Below, in pieces: positions 10,085-63,935 of a stretch of 64,000 nt of DNA (its first letter is position 1; the number at the start of each line of letters is the position of its first letter). The stretch covers positions 12,152,001-12,216,000 of the forward strand of contig CM106586.1 in the NCBI GenBank assembly GCA_048013815.1, in the 5' to 3' direction. The DNA is from Setoptus koraiensis. Its lineage: Eukaryota; Animalia; Arthropoda. The notes beneath the pieces were generated by a model. It searched no databases. It saw only the letters and a list, made by a program, of their open reading frames with translations, and had not been told where the DNA came from. Both the position numbers and the translations under genes were made by a program.

Positions 10085-29586
<19,502 letters not shown>

Positions 29587-55577: not shown

Positions 55578-57601
55578 TTAATTCATTGTTCATTCGAGTC
55601 GCATCTGGCTGACAACATCGTGTATATTCTATCTAATATTGGTTGTCTTCCGTCGAGAAGACCTGGGTTTAGAATGAGATTCGCCATCCGGACAGCAATT
55701 ATCTTCGGTTTCCGGCAGTGCTTCGAAAAGGCCAAGAAGGCCAGAGGATATCTTCTGGAGTCGCCCTGCCACATGAATGTTTCGATTCTGGATCGAACTC
55801 CGGATCATCTTTCAAAACCGGTTCGGATAACTGGTTTGACATATTTCTTATCATTCAATTCTTGTAAAGTACAAACGGTGTATAAACTGGTCAAATCAGA
55901 CCACTTAATGTCATACATACAACAAATTACGATATTGATCTAAGTGCACTTTCTTCAAGTATCAAGTCAAATTAAACATATCTGATGAGGCCTGCTCAGT
56001 GCTCGACGGCCTGTTTCGCGCTTCGCAGATCGAGACCGCCACACAACTTGCTTTACGTTCTCTTTCCCTGTGTGCATTTTGCACGTAGAGTGAATGGGGC
56101 CCAATTGGGAACTTTTTTCGCTGATCATCTCATCTGACTAGCCTTTCACACAACTGCACAGGAAGCACTGCTTACGTTGCTAGTTATTGCATCAACAAAA
56201 CATCAGAACTATAAACAACAATACAAGTATCGGGCAAAAATTTATGAGCGCACAGGCTCAAGAAATCAAACATGAAATGAGGAGAGGCCAAATGATGATA
56301 TTCTCTGCACACTGGTACCTACATTTCTTAATACAGCAAGCAATACGGAACATTCCTAAAATCATCAATTCCCTCTATGATGGTTGATCATTCAAAGCAG
56401 CAAAACGTCACAATTTCACTCCAGTGCTCACTAATATTCGGCAATAGTTATGCTATGACAAGCAACTATAACTGACATTTATTACAACCATCATTCGAAC
56501 ACTAAGAATATACCCCAAATAATCTGATGCAATAATGAAGGTAAGTGAAGTTGATTCTGGCGACAAAAAACAAACAAACAAACATGCTTTTACATTCACA
56601 CACGCACACACATGTGACGTGACCTCAATTGTCAGTCTCACCAATGTATGATATTGGATTGAGACAACCAAATATCAAAACAAATTGATTGCGAATGTCT
56701 ACTATTTAGCAAAGCGAGTTATGATAGTTAAGAATCCATGATACCTCGTGCTCACAGTGAGTTTTATCGTGATAGATTGCTGTGAGGCACTAGCTGTTTG
56801 CACTTTCCATGTGGCAAACAAAGCAGTAACAACTGAACGGGTAATCTGTTTAACAAGAGTATGCAAATGAATTAGATTTTCCCTAAAAACTCAATACTCA
56901 CAACAAAAGCCACCATTGTCCAACGTCAGCACTGAGATGATCGGCTTGAATTTTACTCTTATGAGCGATGAAATCCTTATCTTCCTGTGCAAAGTCTGAA
57001 TTCAGTGTTGCCGTGCTCGTATCTAGCTTAGAGTATCTTGCGAGTTTTGAAGACAAATATTCGTTTGAGTGTGAAGTGGAACCAACACATTTGAGCTCCT
57101 TGTTTCCATTAGCAAATACTTTCATAGTATTAATAATGGCATATTGGTTGCCGGTTAGAGCTTCTTCTTTTGGGTGCTCATACCATTTCCTATCATTCAA
57201 TTCTTGTAATCTACTACCGCGTATAAAACTGGTCAAACCAACAGTCAAATAGATAGCATCTGAAATAGCCCGAAATTGGTGCTTACACATTGAATATCTG
57301 CTGATTCAGTCAGACCCGCGACAATGATTCGGTTGATGAGCAACGAGTGTATCCAGATTTTTGAAAGTGGCCCAACAAAGTTCCGAATATGAATGGTTAG
57401 CGTTTATACCCAACACTCGCTTACTGTAACAGCCATTCGATGATGATTATCCGTGTAGCGAAAAGCCTGAAACAATTCTTCATTGTTCCTCATACTATCA
57501 GCTACAGTTTTGTACCGTTTTATCGCGGTAACCGCAGTAGAATGAGTTGCCAGTAAATATTTTTCATTCCACGCCCCGTTAGATAAACTCGTTCCACGCT
57601 G

Positions 57602-58588
57602 ATGTCTTCGTTGACCCCAGGACTAATGCGTGACTATATTCATTCGTTTCAAAATTCTCATTTGTGTATCAATTCACAACAAAACAGCAGTAGTAGCCAG
57701 GCCAGTAGATTGTCCCACGAAGAGGAGATGAATTTTCTGAAAAAGAAATTAACCGGATTGACATCTTCAAGCAACAACAGCAAAAAGCGCACGAATGAGG
57801 AGCCAGAAGATCCCTACGACGATTATATTGTTGAGGCACCGCCGCATCCATCTGAATTGTTAGCTGTTGGTTTAGATCCAAACACAATCGATACAAGCGA
57901 TCCAGAGAAATTAAAGGAGATCTATAGAGAGGCCAAAGCTAAGGGCTTAGATAAAAAGGTCAATAGTGTCTTATTAGCTAAACAAAAACAATTGCTCGAT
58001 ATAGAAGAGAAGAAAAAAGACAAAGAAGAGTGGAAGTTTTTTGAATCGTTGACAGCTCGTGTTGAGGCCACAGTGAAACAATCTCAGCAAGCGCTAGAAC
58101 AAATTAAAACAACTAGCGCCGTTGATAGTATCAACGAGCCCGAATTTGAGCTGCGTCTAACAGCCGAAGACGTTTTCAAGGGATCGGCTCCAGTGGTGCC
58201 ATCACAATCAGAAAGCGCCAACGATCAGGGCTGGGTGGCCTTCGAGGAGGACACAATTGAGCAACAGACCACGATAAAAGACGATCAAAACACATCAACA
58301 ACAATTGACACCGGCGAGCCAGCACAGCAAGAGCTCGATAACAACTACAATATTGTTGAAGAATTGCTAGAAGATTTCGGCCTAGACCTGAGACCTAACA
58401 CCCCCCGGTTGAATAATAATATTAATAATAACGACAACAACCAGCCGCAGCGGCAACAGCAATCGACAGTTAGTGGCTCAAAACAACTCGACGACCAGCA
58501 GCAACAAATAGCTGGCAGTGGCGAGCCCAACAAAATTGAAATAGATCCATTCGACACTTCTTACGTGACACAATTTATTAAGAGTTGA
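57602..58588 (+). CDS. stnA: Stoned A-like protein, first cistron; 328 aa, or 286 aa if the start is ATG 57728
   Basis: Lys-rich MNFLKKK start region, KEEWKFFESLTARVEATVKQSQ..LEQIK block typical of Stoned A, WVAF and DPFDTS AP-2-binding motifs; lies directly upstream of stoned B. Confidence 0.8.
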   Translation: MSSLTPGLMRDYIHSFQNSHLCINSQQNSSSSQASRLSHEEEMNFLKKKLTGLTSSSNNSKKRTNEEPEDPYDDYIVEAPPHPSELLAVGLDPNTIDTSDPEKLKEIYREAKAKGLDKKVNSVLLAKQKQLLDIEEKKKDKEEWKFFESLTARVEATVKQSQQALEQIKTTSAVDSINEPEFELRLTAEDVFKGSAPVVPSQSESANDQGWVAFEEDTIEQQTTIKDDQNTSTTIDTGEPAQQELDNNYNIVEELLEDFGLDLRPNTPRLNNNINNNDNNQPQRQQQSTVSGSKQLDDQQQQIAGSGEPNKIEIDPFDTSYVTQFIKS

Positions 58589-58605
58589 TCGCCGGCACAA
58601 CAACT

Positions 58606-61600
58606 ATGAATCCGGCCGACAAAAGCAATCCATTTCTGGTTGGCTGGGAACAGACCGACGACGCCATCTTAGACACCAACAATATTATTGATGAGTTAGA
58701 GGAAGTAGACGCAAAGGTGATTGGCGAGGCAGCTTCAGCTTTCGATCCATTCGAGACCATAATCGATGACGACTCTTCTCTGTCGTCGTCGCCCGGCCTC
58801 CAGCATAATGCCGCTCCTAATGCACAAAATAATGAAATAAAAATGTCGGACGATCTCGCCGCTATGGCCATGACCAACATTGGCAGCAACAACAACATGA
58901 ACAGTATCAACGACACAAACAACAGTGACAACATTGGCTCAATTTATCATAATGTTGACGACGACAGTGGCCAACTCGATCAGATGCAATTGGCCTGCAC
59001 ACAATCCGATGATGACGGTCATTACCAAGAGCAGCTAAATGTCGATGACAGAGACGAGAGCCTGCGCAAGTCGCTAAGAATAGACCTAGATCAGAACTAC
59101 AATGGTCAACATGATGTTGGCGAGGATATTCGGCCGCTGGCCTCAGTGACAAACGCATCAGATGAGGTGGAAAAATATTCTGCCACCGATTATCACGACG
59201 AACATCAGTGCATTGATGAGGACGAAAACGGGGAGCTAGCTCGCAGCAATTTACCCAACAGTTTCTTTGATCCATTCGAGACAGTGATAGACAAAGACGC
59301 GCTTAACACACCGATGAATGCGAAATATTTCGAGGACGAGCTAACAGTTGAGTCGGCCATTGAGACTAGCAACGATAACTCGGTGACAAATTTTGACGAT
59401 TTTCAGCGACAAGACAACGAGCAAACGAACGACGTTGTGTTGGAGCAATCAAGACAAGACAGAGGGTCAGAAGCGGCCGTCGGGCCCGTATCTAAGGTTG
59501 AGTTGGCAGAAGAAACAAGCATAGAGCAACATCCACAACAAGCACAACCGCAACAACAAGCAACCAACAGCACAACAGTGCCAGAGATTAAAGAAAGAAT
59601 TGAGGTCCCAATGAAGCAGACTGTTGTTGCGCCTAGCACGCCGGCGAAGAATCGCACACCGCGCCACAGGAGAAAGGCCTCATTTCAGGAGGATTCGTCT
59701 GATGAGGACGACGAAGACGACAGAATACAGATAGTAATTCGTGCCAAAGACACTGGCGATATCACTCGCTCTCACGGGGCCTCGTTTGTTCCTTTATTGC
59801 CTCCGCCGCCTTCGAAGAGCTCAATGAAACAGGCCAGAGAACGTGGCCAAGTAGAAGATATGCCCAGTCCAATTATAACTCATTGTAGGAAGTCGGCGGC
59901 AGCATCGGCGGCCGCTGCATCGTCCGGTGTCAATCATACGGGCGGCGAGCTGGCCGATAGCAATAACACAGGTAGATCGGACAAAACAGAGCCAGCCAAG
60001 CTGGATAGGCGGATGAGCGAGCACGAGGATTTTGACGGGGATGGGGCGCGCCTTCACAACGACCACAACAATGACAACGAGGAACAATACGATGACAATG
60101 ATAATGATGAGGCCGACAATAACAAGCACGGCGACGATGGAGCCTTTGTTATTGGGGGCGCCGGCGAGGGAACAGACACGCCGTTGTACGACGATGACAC
60201 ATCGTATGTTTTAGAGGATTTTCCGCCCAAATTCACCGAGGCCGGCTGGAATATGATGTTGCGTTATCCGCCTAAAAAGAAGTTAACTAGCAATAGATTT
60301 TGGAAGAGAATATTTGTTAAAATAGCGCGTAGTAGTAGTAGTGGCGCACAATCACAAGATAATAGTGTTGTGTTGCAAATATATGAGAATGCCCAAGAGA
60401 AGCCCGTGCAAGAGATTAGATTACAGCCCACATACACTATTTCAGAAATAAGCACACAACAATACGATCAATTTGGTAAAATATTCACACTTAAAATACA
60501 ATATATATTTTATAGGGAGCGGGTAGGTGTTAGACCGGGCCAATTGGCACGTCTCGTCCATTCGGGCCACATAGGCGCCAGCACAACAAGCGGCGGCCAC
60601 GGAGTGGGGCCCACCAGCATTGGCGACCTGAAACGGTACGGGGCCCCGCTGGAGCATGTGCCTCAGGTGTCGCAAATAATCAAGCTGGGCTGTCAGAGTT
60701 ACAGTGACATAAAACAGTTGAAATGTTGCCTGGAGGACGAATTGTTTAAGATGCCCATAGCCAGGGACAAGGCAATGTCCGTGTATAAAACGGAGGAGAT
60801 TCAAATGGCCGTCAGAGACGAAATATACATTGAGTGCAATCAGGTGGGCACCATAACAAAACAATTGGCCCGTGTTAGACTGTTTTTCTTGTCGTTCATG
60901 AATGGAATGCCCGTGGTTGAGGTGGGCATAAACGACATTTATCGTCAGGGCAAAGAGATTGTGGGCAGACTGGACATATTGCCCGTGGTGACGGAAGAAT
61001 GGATTAGGATAGAGGCAAGCGAATTGCATTGCACGGTGGACCAGGAGGAATTTAAGAAGCCCGATTCGAGAATGATCAAATTGAGCCCGCCAGACGGTGT
61101 CTTTTTCGAGCTGATGCGATTCCGTGTTCGGCCGCCCAGAAATCGCGAATTGCCCCTACAGGTGAGCGCCAGTATGTGTGTGACCCGCACTAAGGTCACA
61201 ATTAATTGTGACGTAATTGTGCCAGGTTGCACAAGTAGAAAACACGGCCAGATACCGTGCGAGGACATTGCCATTAGAATTTATGTGCCCGAATGTTGGA
61301 TTTATTTCTTTAGGACAGAGAAACACTTTAGGTATGGCTCGGTGAAATCAACTAATAAACGGGCCGGTAAGGTCAAGGGCATTGAGAGATTTTTGGGTGG
61401 AGGCGACACGGGCGAATCTAACAGTCTCATTGAGGTTACGTCGGGCCAGGCGAAATACGAGCACCATTACAATGCTATTGTGTGGCGAGCCGCCAGGTGG
61501 CCCAAGGAAAATCAGTCGGCCTATGTACAAAATTCATTAAAAATCAAGATGCCATTAACCATTTACGACAAGATGCCTGACACGTTCAACGAATACATTT

Positions 61601-61956
61601 ATGTTGAATACTCAATGCCGGCAACAACGGTGTCGCACACAACATTACGATCCATTTCGGTGAATCCTTGCGACGACGAACCGCCAGAGAAATATGTCAA
61701 ATATTCTGCCAATTATGAATATAAGGTCAAAATGAGACTGTCTATTAATCTCAACAGCAACAAATCTGATAACGCCCTGGTTGAGGAAAAATCGCCAATT
61801 ATAATTATGAAGCAACCCGATGCTCCACAGGACCTAATCAGGCAAGAGGATAGCGACGACGATGATGATAGTGATTTTAGCGAAGAGAAAGAAAACGACA
61901 ACAGTGCTGCTCATCGCCAACAAGGCCAGGCAAGGGATAACGATTACGCAACATAA
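58606..61956 (+). CDS. stnB: Stoned B / stonin, second cistron, 1116 aa, intronless
   Basis: First ATG at 58606 (the ORF track start at 58585 is TTG). N-terminal NPF, stonin homology domain (GWNMMLRYPPKKKLTSNRFWKRIFVKI) and mu-homology domain (RLFFLSFMNGMP, PPDGVFFELMRFRVR, EKYVKYSANYEYKV). Confidence 0.93.
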   Translation: MNPADKSNPFLVGWEQTDDAILDTNNIIDELEEVDAKVIGEAASAFDPFETIIDDDSSLSSSPGLQHNAAPNAQNNEIKMSDDLAAMAMTNIGSNNNMNSINDTNNSDNIGSIYHNVDDDSGQLDQMQLACTQSDDDGHYQEQLNVDDRDESLRKSLRIDLDQNYNGQHDVGEDIRPLASVTNASDEVEKYSATDYHDEHQCIDEDENGELARSNLPNSFFDPFETVIDKDALNTPMNAKYFEDELTVESAIETSNDNSVTNFDDFQRQDNEQTNDVVLEQSRQDRGSEAAVGPVSKVELAEETSIEQHPQQAQPQQQATNSTTVPEIKERIEVPMKQTVVAPSTPAKNRTPRHRRKASFQEDSSDEDDEDDRIQIVIRAKDTGDITRSHGASFVPLLPPPPSKSSMKQARERGQVEDMPSPIITHCRKSAAASAAAASSGVNHTGGELADSNNTGRSDKTEPAKLDRRMSEHEDFDGDGARLHNDHNNDNEEQYDDNDNDEADNNKHGDDGAFVIGGAGEGTDTPLYDDDTSYVLEDFPPKFTEAGWNMMLRYPPKKKLTSNRFWKRIFVKIARSSSSGAQSQDNSVVLQIYENAQEKPVQEIRLQPTYTISEISTQQYDQFGKIFTLKIQYIFYRERVGVRPGQLARLVHSGHIGASTTSGGHGVGPTSIGDLKRYGAPLEHVPQVSQIIKLGCQSYSDIKQLKCCLEDELFKMPIARDKAMSVYKTEEIQMAVRDEIYIECNQVGTITKQLARVRLFFLSFMNGMPVVEVGINDIYRQGKEIVGRLDILPVVTEEWIRIEASELHCTVDQEEFKKPDSRMIKLSPPDGVFFELMRFRVRPPRNRELPLQVSASMCVTRTKVTINCDVIVPGCTSRKHGQIPCEDIAIRIYVPECWIYFFRTEKHFRYGSVKSTNKRAGKVKGIERFLGGGDTGESNSLIEVTSGQAKYEHHYNAIVWRAARWPKENQSAYVQNSLKIKMPLTIYDKMPDTFNEYIYVEYSMPATTVSHTTLRSISVNPCDDEPPEKYVKYSANYEYKVKMRLSINLNSNKSDNALVEEKSPIIIMKQPDAPQDLIRQEDSDDDDDSDFSEEKENDNSAAHRQQGQARDNDYAT

Positions 61957-62866: not shown

Positions 62867-63935
62867 TCAGATATTAATTATAGGTAAACCGTCAATCAAA
62901 TTGTCCTTCCTACGGCCCTGTTGCTGTTGTTTAGTGAGATCTCTCATTGGGGCGCTGTTAATATTGTTTTCTTGCTCTGCGATTTTGCGTACTTTTGTCA
63001 TCACACCATACTCTAGTGCGTAACAAGCAAAACCATTTATAAGTAATAGTGTAAATATAAACAATGTCAGAACTCTCAGATTGAAATTTGATATGTCCTC
63101 TCTGTCGATTAGAATGGCGCGACAACCTAACGCATAATCGGGACGCTCACAGTAGAATATGGAATCGGTTTTTGATGATCTATGAAGATATTTTTGTTTG
63201 GGATAATTACAGCAAGACGGTGGATACAATCCATAGAAGGTATTATATGATTGCCAATCCTTGGGCTCCATTATGCCGCAGCATTTGAGCACTTGTTGTA
63301 CCCAATCTATAGGCTGAGTGTAGTGATAATTGGTGTCTCCTGGAAACAATCCGTTTATATCCAGGTTGTTGCTATCGTACGAGTATCTGTTGAGTAATGT
63401 GCGCCACGTATTTACGTCCACTTGATGATTCAATTCGAGCTTGAATGGATTAAACCACAAGCAGATTAGCACAAGAAGAAACGTTGTCGATAATACTAAG
63501 CTCAGGATGGTGTATACTCTTAGCCACTTAAATCTCAGTCTGATATCAACCACCAAGAGGCCCAACAAAGCCAGTACTGAGAGCAATATTAGAGCCACAT
63601 TGAATAGTATTATGGCCATCTTGAAGCTGTGAGTATAAAGTATGACTCCATTGTAGTCTCTGATGAGGTCAGCTGAATTGCTGGCGGCTTTCAGTATGTT
63701 AGTGGAACATATCAACTGATTTGTAACGGTTTAGTGATGAAATAAAATGAAGTTACACAATAAGCGATTTTGAGCATAACTTTTTAACGTGGTTGATTGA
63801 GGCTACAAGTTGTATACTAACCAATGTCAATGAGTTTATTATAACAAGATAAATGAAAAACAAGTTGGTCATACCAAAATATTTGAGAATTTTTGTCGAG
63901 TTGCGCTCTCGACACCCATTATCGGACAGCTCCAT
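62867..63935 (-). CDS. Tetraspanin family protein, 2 exons, about 320 aa
   Basis: Exon 63822-63935 (TM1); intron 63716-63821 (GTTAGT...ATCAG, 106 nt); exon 62867-63715 with TM2-4 and a large extracellular loop carrying DWVQQVLKCCG, PPSCC and GC motifs. Confidence 0.85.

Follow-up and report, generated by a model that had tools for sequence, protein, structure and literature searches.

An ATG-free stretch ahead of stoned B in an eriophyoid-type mite, compared with split and fused stoned genes of other arthropods

Translation of two proteins from one eukaryotic mRNA has been described for the Drosophila genes stoned and Snapin, where the second open reading frame (ORF2) is reached by context-dependent leaky scanning and where this requires a first open reading frame (ORF1) that has no in-frame AUGs (Wall et al. 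2005, in the passages of PMC2978622, PMC3372440 and PMC11892635 that treat it). The effects of ORF1 AUG changes on ORF2 output are, according to the passages of PMC2978622 and PMC11892635 that cite Wall et al. 2005, shown for Drosophila alone. StnA proteins, the products of the first stoned cistron, have been stated to occur only in insects (PMC3393740). A similar organization is known from green-algal bicistronic mRNAs (PNAS 2025, PMC11892635), in which the AUG trinucleotide is depleted in all frames of ORF1 and of the inter-ORF region and not in ORF2, and in which reinsertion of AUGs lowers ORF2 output, a result that was read as cap-dependent leaky scanning. The locus described here has the same all-frame depletion of upstream AUGs, although both the genes and the kingdom are unrelated to the algal ones. 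A viral likeness is also said to exist: for ORFs I–III of rice tungro bacilliform virus, Futterer and colleagues reportedly described in 1997 a long AUG-poor stretch and leaky scanning, with nearly 1 kb almost free of AUGs in all frames ahead of a start to which ribosomes scan; this RNA is said to differ in being viral and pregenomic, in having a shunt and in using a non-AUG codon as its first start.

The window, by which we mean the whole stretch of 64,000 nucleotides of the Setoptus koraiensis genome that was analyzed, contains orthologues of the two cistrons of Drosophila melanogaster stoned (Andrews et al. 1996; Wall, Phillips and Kelly 2005, J Biol Chem 280:27670), in the same order and on the same strand. 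The two coding regions, stnA and stnB, are both intron-less and no gene lies between them. The features of the locus are as follows.

57602 to 57628, plus strand: pair of ATGs ahead of stnA, at 57602 and 57626, sharing its frame and each preceded by C at -3
57728 to 58588, plus strand: stnA coding sequence for 286 aa, closed by TGA (UGA at 58586), no internal Met
57795 to 57863, plus strand: sole internal ATG of stnA, out of frame, context cgaATGa, opening a 22-codon ORF
57798 to 58605, plus strand: ATG-free stretch of 808 nt, comprising the rest of stnA and the spacer
58589 to 58605, plus strand: intercistronic spacer, 17 nt
58606 to 61956, plus strand: stnB (stoned B / stonin) coding sequence, 1116 aa, mu-homology domain, A at -3

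The original prediction of a stoned A / stoned B tandem at this position is borne out by database comparisons of both products. StnB matches the Pfam family Adap_comp_sub (adaptor medium-subunit, mu-homology, C-terminal) at 2e-39 and is 55–59% identical over 511 aa to mite and insect proteins that carry the name stoned-B, the nearest being those of the acariform mites Oppia (59%) and Halotydeus (57%), followed by insects (55–56%); its closest relatives, at 64–75% identity, are found on contigs from public runs and metagenomes. StnA has an MNFLKKKL N-terminus, an EEWKFF..LTARVE core and a DPFDTSYV C-terminal motif, and nearly all of its 53 homologues start MNF/YLKKKLK and end DPFDTSY/FV; the sole named member of this close family is from the eriophyoid mite Aceria tosichella. 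With mites as the best named matches of StnB and a mite in the StnA family, a fly as the source of the sequence is ruled out. A profile of 26 mite StnA proteins matches the Ranatra 'Protein stoned-A' (E=4e-11) together with many insect proteins of 625–1161 aa, and StnA of D. mauritiana is matched at E ~2e-4, both pairwise and by profile, on the EEWKFF..LT..V core, with DPFDTS repeats in common as well. A Pfam search with StnA returned a single sub-threshold chance match (GapR), and a search of a protein-language atlas returned no meaningful match (best score 0.66). The stnA start is placed at 57728 and not at 57602 because the N-termini of the homologues (about 45) begin there; the 42-residue extension that would result from starting at 57602 is present in no homologue, and the ATGs at 57602 and 57626 either belong to the 5′ leader or precede the transcription start. 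As to neighboring genes, an Ada3-domain gene is located just upstream of stnA and on the opposite strand in L001, L002, L003 and L005, and a 282-aa ORF on the minus strand of the window (62867–63715), with a CCG motif and several hydrophobic segments, looks like a tetraspanin unrelated to stoned.

The mite locus shares with Drosophila stoned the mu-homology domain of StnB, the EEWKFF core, DPFDTS motifs and basic N-terminus of StnA, an ORF1 that is without in-frame AUGs and has few out-of-frame ones, these in very short ORFs, and an ORF2 with normal AUG density. There are also several differences. The host is an acariform (eriophyoid-type) mite and not an insect; mite StnA is 286 aa long with a single DPFDTS motif, whereas that of the fly has 850 aa and several; the spacer is 17 nt as against about 54 nt; and the coding region of mite stnA, unlike that of the fly, has no intron. 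Furthermore, the depletion in this mite is nearly absolute, with one ATG in 0.88 kb.

A computational scan of the plus strand finds ATGs at 57602, 57626, 57728 and 57795, with the next at 58606. The claim that no plus-strand ATG occurs between 57798 and 58605 thus holds, as do the frames originally assigned to the flanking ATGs (57602, 57626 and 57728 in frame, 57795 out of frame with its 22-codon ORF). A first-order Markov model of 57798–58605 predicts 11.8 ATGs where none is seen (P ~7e-6), and all of the other 63 trinucleotides do occur in this stretch. The gap of 811 nt before 58606 is the longest in the 64-kb window, which has a mean of 18.2 ATGs per kb. Low complexity was considered as a cause of the ATG desert and is ruled out, because the 3-mer entropy of the stretch is normal (5.71, compared with 5.77 in stnB). 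The ORF opened by the ATG at 57795 has its stop ending at 57863, 743 nt upstream of the stnB ATG. The second-longest ATG gap of the window (698 nt, 13375–14073) is A-poor with TTG repeats and apparently lies antisense to a minus-strand coding region of low complexity, a compositional effect and no signal.

The avoidance of AUG in stnA exceeds chance, and it does so at two levels. The first is that of the protein: StnA has no internal Met over 285–286 residues (P=0.0016–0.01 if Met is taken to be as frequent as in stnB or in background ORFs). The second is synonymous. When the protein is held fixed, synonymous codons are permuted and out-of-frame ATGs are counted, stnA has a single one against 5.5 expected from 57728 onward (P=0.003), or against 7.0 when counted from 57602 (P=0.0002), and stnB is not depleted (43 against 48.5 expected). 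The His, Asn, Asp and Tyr codons of stnA end in T or C in a ratio of 1:9 before G and of 24:18 elsewhere (Fisher P=0.012), and the single NAT|G pair is the one that forms the ATG at 57795. Five other long ORFs of the window have a NAT|G to NAC|G ratio of 89:90, from which stnA differs (P=0.02). Codon-shuffled controls and a comparison with other coding sequences had been proposed as checks on the original prediction, and both speak for it: the shuffle gives the shortfall of one against 5.5, and no NAC-G bias is present in the five other ORFs. Its details also stand on recount, in that the nine NAC|G pairs are all exact, both Trp codons are preceded by GAG or GGC, and stoned B uses NAT before G freely, with 40 NAT|G and 55 NAC|G pairs. 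The density of ATGs in stnB is normal (20.6 per kb), and its product has 26 Met. Because Met exclusion and synonymous avoidance occur together, chance is a very unlikely explanation.

The stnA ATG lies in gagATGa and the stnB ATG in actATGa, which places G at -3 in the former and A in the latter; in the orthologues both starts have a purine at -3, and that of stnA is A in four of them. The contexts had been proposed to favor stnB, with C at -3 in three of the four upstream ATGs, and this is correct for the A at -3 of stnB but not for the conserved stnA start at 57728, which has G. Judged by these sequences, a weak Kozak context of the stnA start is not evident, which differs from the algal ORF1s, mostly short and with a documented weaker Kozak context (PMC11892635). 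Four related loci have upstream ATGs 17–44 nt ahead of the stnA start. It is speculation on our part that a very short leader could be the reason for a leaky stnA AUG.

The same stnA–stnB tandem is present in five orthologous loci from related mites, for which spacers and numbers of out-of-frame ATGs in stnA, with those expected from synonymous shuffling, are as follows.

L001: spacer 16 nt; 7 out-of-frame ATGs, 10.5 expected (P 0.055)
L004: spacer 18 nt; 1 out-of-frame ATG, 6.3 expected (P 0.001)
L005: spacer 60 nt; 4 out-of-frame ATGs, 9.6 expected (P 0.002)
L006: spacer 15 nt; 7 out-of-frame ATGs, 7.6 expected (not significant)
L012: spacer 8 nt; 3 out-of-frame ATGs, 3.9 expected (not significant)

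Pooled without the window, these five loci have 22 out-of-frame ATGs against 37.9 expected (P=0.004), and the combined P over six loci, including the window, is ~4e-6. Internal Met is absent from about 38 of 47 close StnA homologues. Neither the sequence nor the length (8–60 nt) of the spacer is conserved among the related mites, and the frame offset between stnA and stnB is 0, 1 or 2 depending on the species. The residual out-of-frame ATGs open ORFs of 1–24 codons only, and these end at least 345 nt upstream of stnB in the four related loci checked; in L012 they are of 4–18 codons and the last ATG is 315 nt upstream of stnB. At least the last 315 nt ahead of stnB are free of ATGs in every mite locus, with the residual ones clustered in the 5′ part of stnA. 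The window is thus the extreme of a graded, clade-specific pattern and no qualitative novelty.

Each locus of the mite clade retains at least one out-of-frame ATG 60–140 nt past the stnA start, in an acidic region rich in Y, D and E (window 57795; L001 6131–6140; L004 761; L005 6062–6080; L006 6092–6101; L012 mRNA 107–116). Each of these early ATGs opens an ORF of 4–24 codons, which may be tolerated or may be a small regulatory overlapping ORF. One Logan contig of the same clade has a 1298-aa ORF (protein P0071) in which the first ~180 StnA residues are fused in frame to StnB-like sequence, with no DPFDTS tail and with internal Met from residue 182 onward; a secondary re-fusion, a deletion or faulty assembly may account for it.

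Insect stoned genes have a similar paucity of AUGs. The D. mauritiana gene, with one intron, encodes an 850-aa StnA, and its stnA mRNA has 5 internal ATGs in 2.6 kb against 13.2 expected (P ~0.001), all of them out of frame and opening ORFs of 9–18 codons. On a second insect contig, in which a 1161-aa StnA, a 115-nt spacer and StnB are contiguous, the 3.6 kb of stnA hold 2 internal ATGs where 20.4 are expected, and the ATG-free tail is 2.5 kb. Neither insect stnA has an in-frame AUG, and almost all of the representative insect StnA proteins (625–1161 aa) have a single Met. The insect spacers are of 54–115 nt. All-frame paucity of AUGs is accordingly not a novel principle of the mite locus, since the insects have it too (5 ATGs in 2.6 kb and 2 in 3.6 kb), and stoned ORF1 is described as 'deficient in internal AUG codons' in the part of the literature that summarizes it.

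Outside these two-cistron genes, the profile built from mite StnA picks out the N-termini of long stonins annotated in Dermacentor ticks (1392 aa) and of Tachypleus (1572 aa), as well as proteins of Rhipicephalus and of the sea spider Nymphon. The Halotydeus genome has one uninterrupted ORF of 1428 codons that holds both the StnA and the StnB module, and the modules are likewise joined in frame in Oppia and in a metagenomic mite (L010). In the fused chelicerate proteins the StnA leader is of about 260–350 residues and has no Met, and in the ticks, the horseshoe crab, Oppia and two further lineages the first internal Met is that of an M-S-NPF sequence aligned with the StnB start. None of the four fused forms tested has a significant shortage of out-of-frame ATGs (Halotydeus 3 against 4.0 expected, Oppia 11 against 13.4, L010 12 against 13.3, and a tick-like contig 1 against 2.6), yet on the tick-like contig the density of ATGs rises from 1.3 per kb ahead of M-S-NPF to 15.3 per kb beyond it. 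On a tick-like Logan contig (L011) a 470-aa ORF without a Pfam match (237–1649) precedes the fused stonin ORF on the same strand, with 30 nt between the two, and the 453 nt upstream of the stonin ATG contain no ATG; this ORF could be a further upstream cistron or a mere neighboring gene on genomic DNA. A 284-aa protein of Dermatophagoides farinae (P0188, XP_075587898.1), annotated separately as an 'uncharacterized protein', is the first part of the StnA module running on into an unrelated Cys-rich tail, and looks like an exon read into an intron.

Comparison of these genes separates two constraints. As judged from the sequences compared, the absence of in-frame AUGs is a conserved rule that extends over about 40 related mites, insects, and the fused forms of ticks, horseshoe crab and other mites. 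Out-of-frame AUGs are unevenly depleted: strongly at this locus, in two insects and in two to three of the five mite relatives, and not at all elsewhere. The proposal that AUGs are purged in every frame consequently describes this locus, with one out-of-frame ATG where 5.5 are expected, but does not extend to L006, L012, Oppia and L010, where out-of-frame AUGs are at expectation. Because out-of-frame AUGs vary and the survivors open ORFs of no more than 24 codons, we read the hard constraint as the absence of in-frame AUGs together with the absence of long out-of-frame ORFs. The same pair of features is stated in the title of Wall et al. 2005.

Drosophila experiments suggest how such a cistron could be bypassed, and stnB is probably reached by leaky scanning past an AUG-cleared stnA on one capped mRNA. 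Both cistrons would be carried by that mRNA, and some 40S subunits would initiate at the stnA AUG (57728); the remainder would scan about 0.88 kb in which they would meet no in-frame AUG and a single weak out-of-frame one (57795), whose 22-codon ORF would end early enough for re-initiation, before starting at the stnB AUG (58606, A at -3). Ribosomes that initiated at an in-frame AUG would be bound to a long ORF ending at or beyond the stnB start, whereas an out-of-frame AUG with an early stop would let scanning resume. Selection would then keep this path clear by keeping Met out of StnA and by preferring NAC over NAT before codons that start with G. The background on which the original prediction had relied, that a lack of in-frame AUGs in cistron 1 permits translation of cistron 2 of Drosophila stoned, is confirmed in the relevant passages of PMC2978622, PMC3372440 and PMC11892635. 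From the Drosophila experiments we infer for the mite a single transcript, leaky scanning and any tuning of the StnA:StnB ratio. The scanning explanation fits all of the comparative tests run, including the variable frame offset, the unconserved spacer and the Met-free leaders of the fused proteins. There are three points against it: position -3 of the stnA start is a purine, G in this mite and A in four orthologues; in L006, L012, Oppia and L010, where out-of-frame ATGs are undepleted, 40S subunits would encounter 7–12 AUGs while scanning; and 57602 and 57626, if included in the mRNA, are two extra in-frame upstream starts. The sequencing runs in which the locus is found look like DNA assemblies, and in one low-coverage run coverage is confined to isolated pieces within the two ORFs, with neither joints nor ends.

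Other ways of expressing stnB have to be weighed against leaky scanning. A fusion of StnA and StnB by readthrough or frameshifting was considered and is ruled out, as the frame offset differs among species; because the offset varies and the spacer is not conserved, a fixed stop-start element is not indicated either. The very short spacers of the mite clade (8, 15, 16, 17 and 18 nt, and one of 60 nt) would nonetheless suit ribosomes that terminate stnA at its UGA (58586) and restart 17 nt further on at stnB, in the manner of calicivirus-type stop-start coupling, with the ATG desert being incidental. Such termination-reinitiation is very improbable here. After an ORF of 286 codons it would normally need a dedicated element, but the spacer and its flanks are unconserved, and an Rfam scan of 57000–59000 gave no match; moreover it does not predict the exclusion of AUGs from stnA, either in frame or out of frame, the fused relatives retain a Met-free leader where there is no stop codon at all, and insect spacers of 54–115 nt and offsets of 0, 1 or 2 show no fixed geometry of stop and start.

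We consider it very improbable that stnB has its own promoter or an IRES, with the ATG-free stretch, or its 3′ part, being the leader of a separate stnB mRNA that overlaps stnA. The clustering of residual ATGs in 5′ stnA, leaving at least 315 nt ATG-free before stnB in all mite loci, is what such a leader would look like, but the depletion begins 70 nt past the stnA AUG and at no internal point, and the exclusion of Met spans all of StnA in more than 60 lineages, including insect proteins of 1161 aa. For Drosophila, Andrews and colleagues in 1996 and Wall and colleagues in 2005 reportedly detected a single dicistronic transcript, and an IRES is said to be unsupported. One insect contig has stnA, spacer and stnB contiguous, and the mechanism reported for Drosophila is leaky scanning on a dicistronic mRNA, in the passage of PMC2978622 that deals with it. 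It might finally be supposed that there is no translational function at all, that a disordered, acidic StnA happens to be free of Met and that the absence of ATGs reflects chance or codon-pair bias. StnA is indeed hydrophilic with few hydrophobic residues, the out-of-frame counts at a single locus are small (1 against 5.5), and two of the five related loci are undepleted. Against this, the N-terminal half of StnB is equally disordered yet rich in Met, with 21 ATGs per kb in the first 1.5 kb of stnB; background ORFs have no NAC|G bias (89:90); the combined P over the six loci is low (~4e-6); and some 2500 leader residues from independent chelicerate lineages are free of Met where about 40 would be expected from the downstream Met frequency. 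We regard an absence of function as very improbable, and leaky scanning as the preferred explanation.

These comparisons bear on the origin of the two-cistron gene. Contrary to the statement in PMC3393740, StnA is by sequence comparison present outside insects and across Chelicerata, where it forms a Met-free N-terminal module of stonin; both points appear to be new in the literature searched. Eriophyoid-type mites have apparently split the gene into two cistrons independently of insects, which likewise appears new in the literature searched, and the mite split looks independent of the insect one because other chelicerates carry the fused ORF. A more tentative proposal, and one that we think possible without favoring it, is that the Met-free StnA leader predates the dicistronic gene and that insects and eriophyoid mites each later gained a stop codon independently. 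If that is true, stonin mRNAs of chelicerates such as ticks, horseshoe crab and oribatid and trombidiform mites may already yield both a long StnA-StnB protein and a short StnB by leaky scanning, and the window would represent a second, convergent origin of the operon-like stoned gene.

The ATG desert of the mite is a confirmation and not a discovery, because the principle is established for Drosophila stoned. Its value lies in the comparative picture, to which the mite clade, with its very short spacers, contributes natural replicates by the dozen. The absolute exclusion of in-frame AUGs, set against the variable depletion of out-of-frame ones, offers a natural readout of which AUGs block downstream initiation, and the occurrence of one gene in both fused and split forms makes it a tractable case for the origin of a eukaryotic dicistronic gene.
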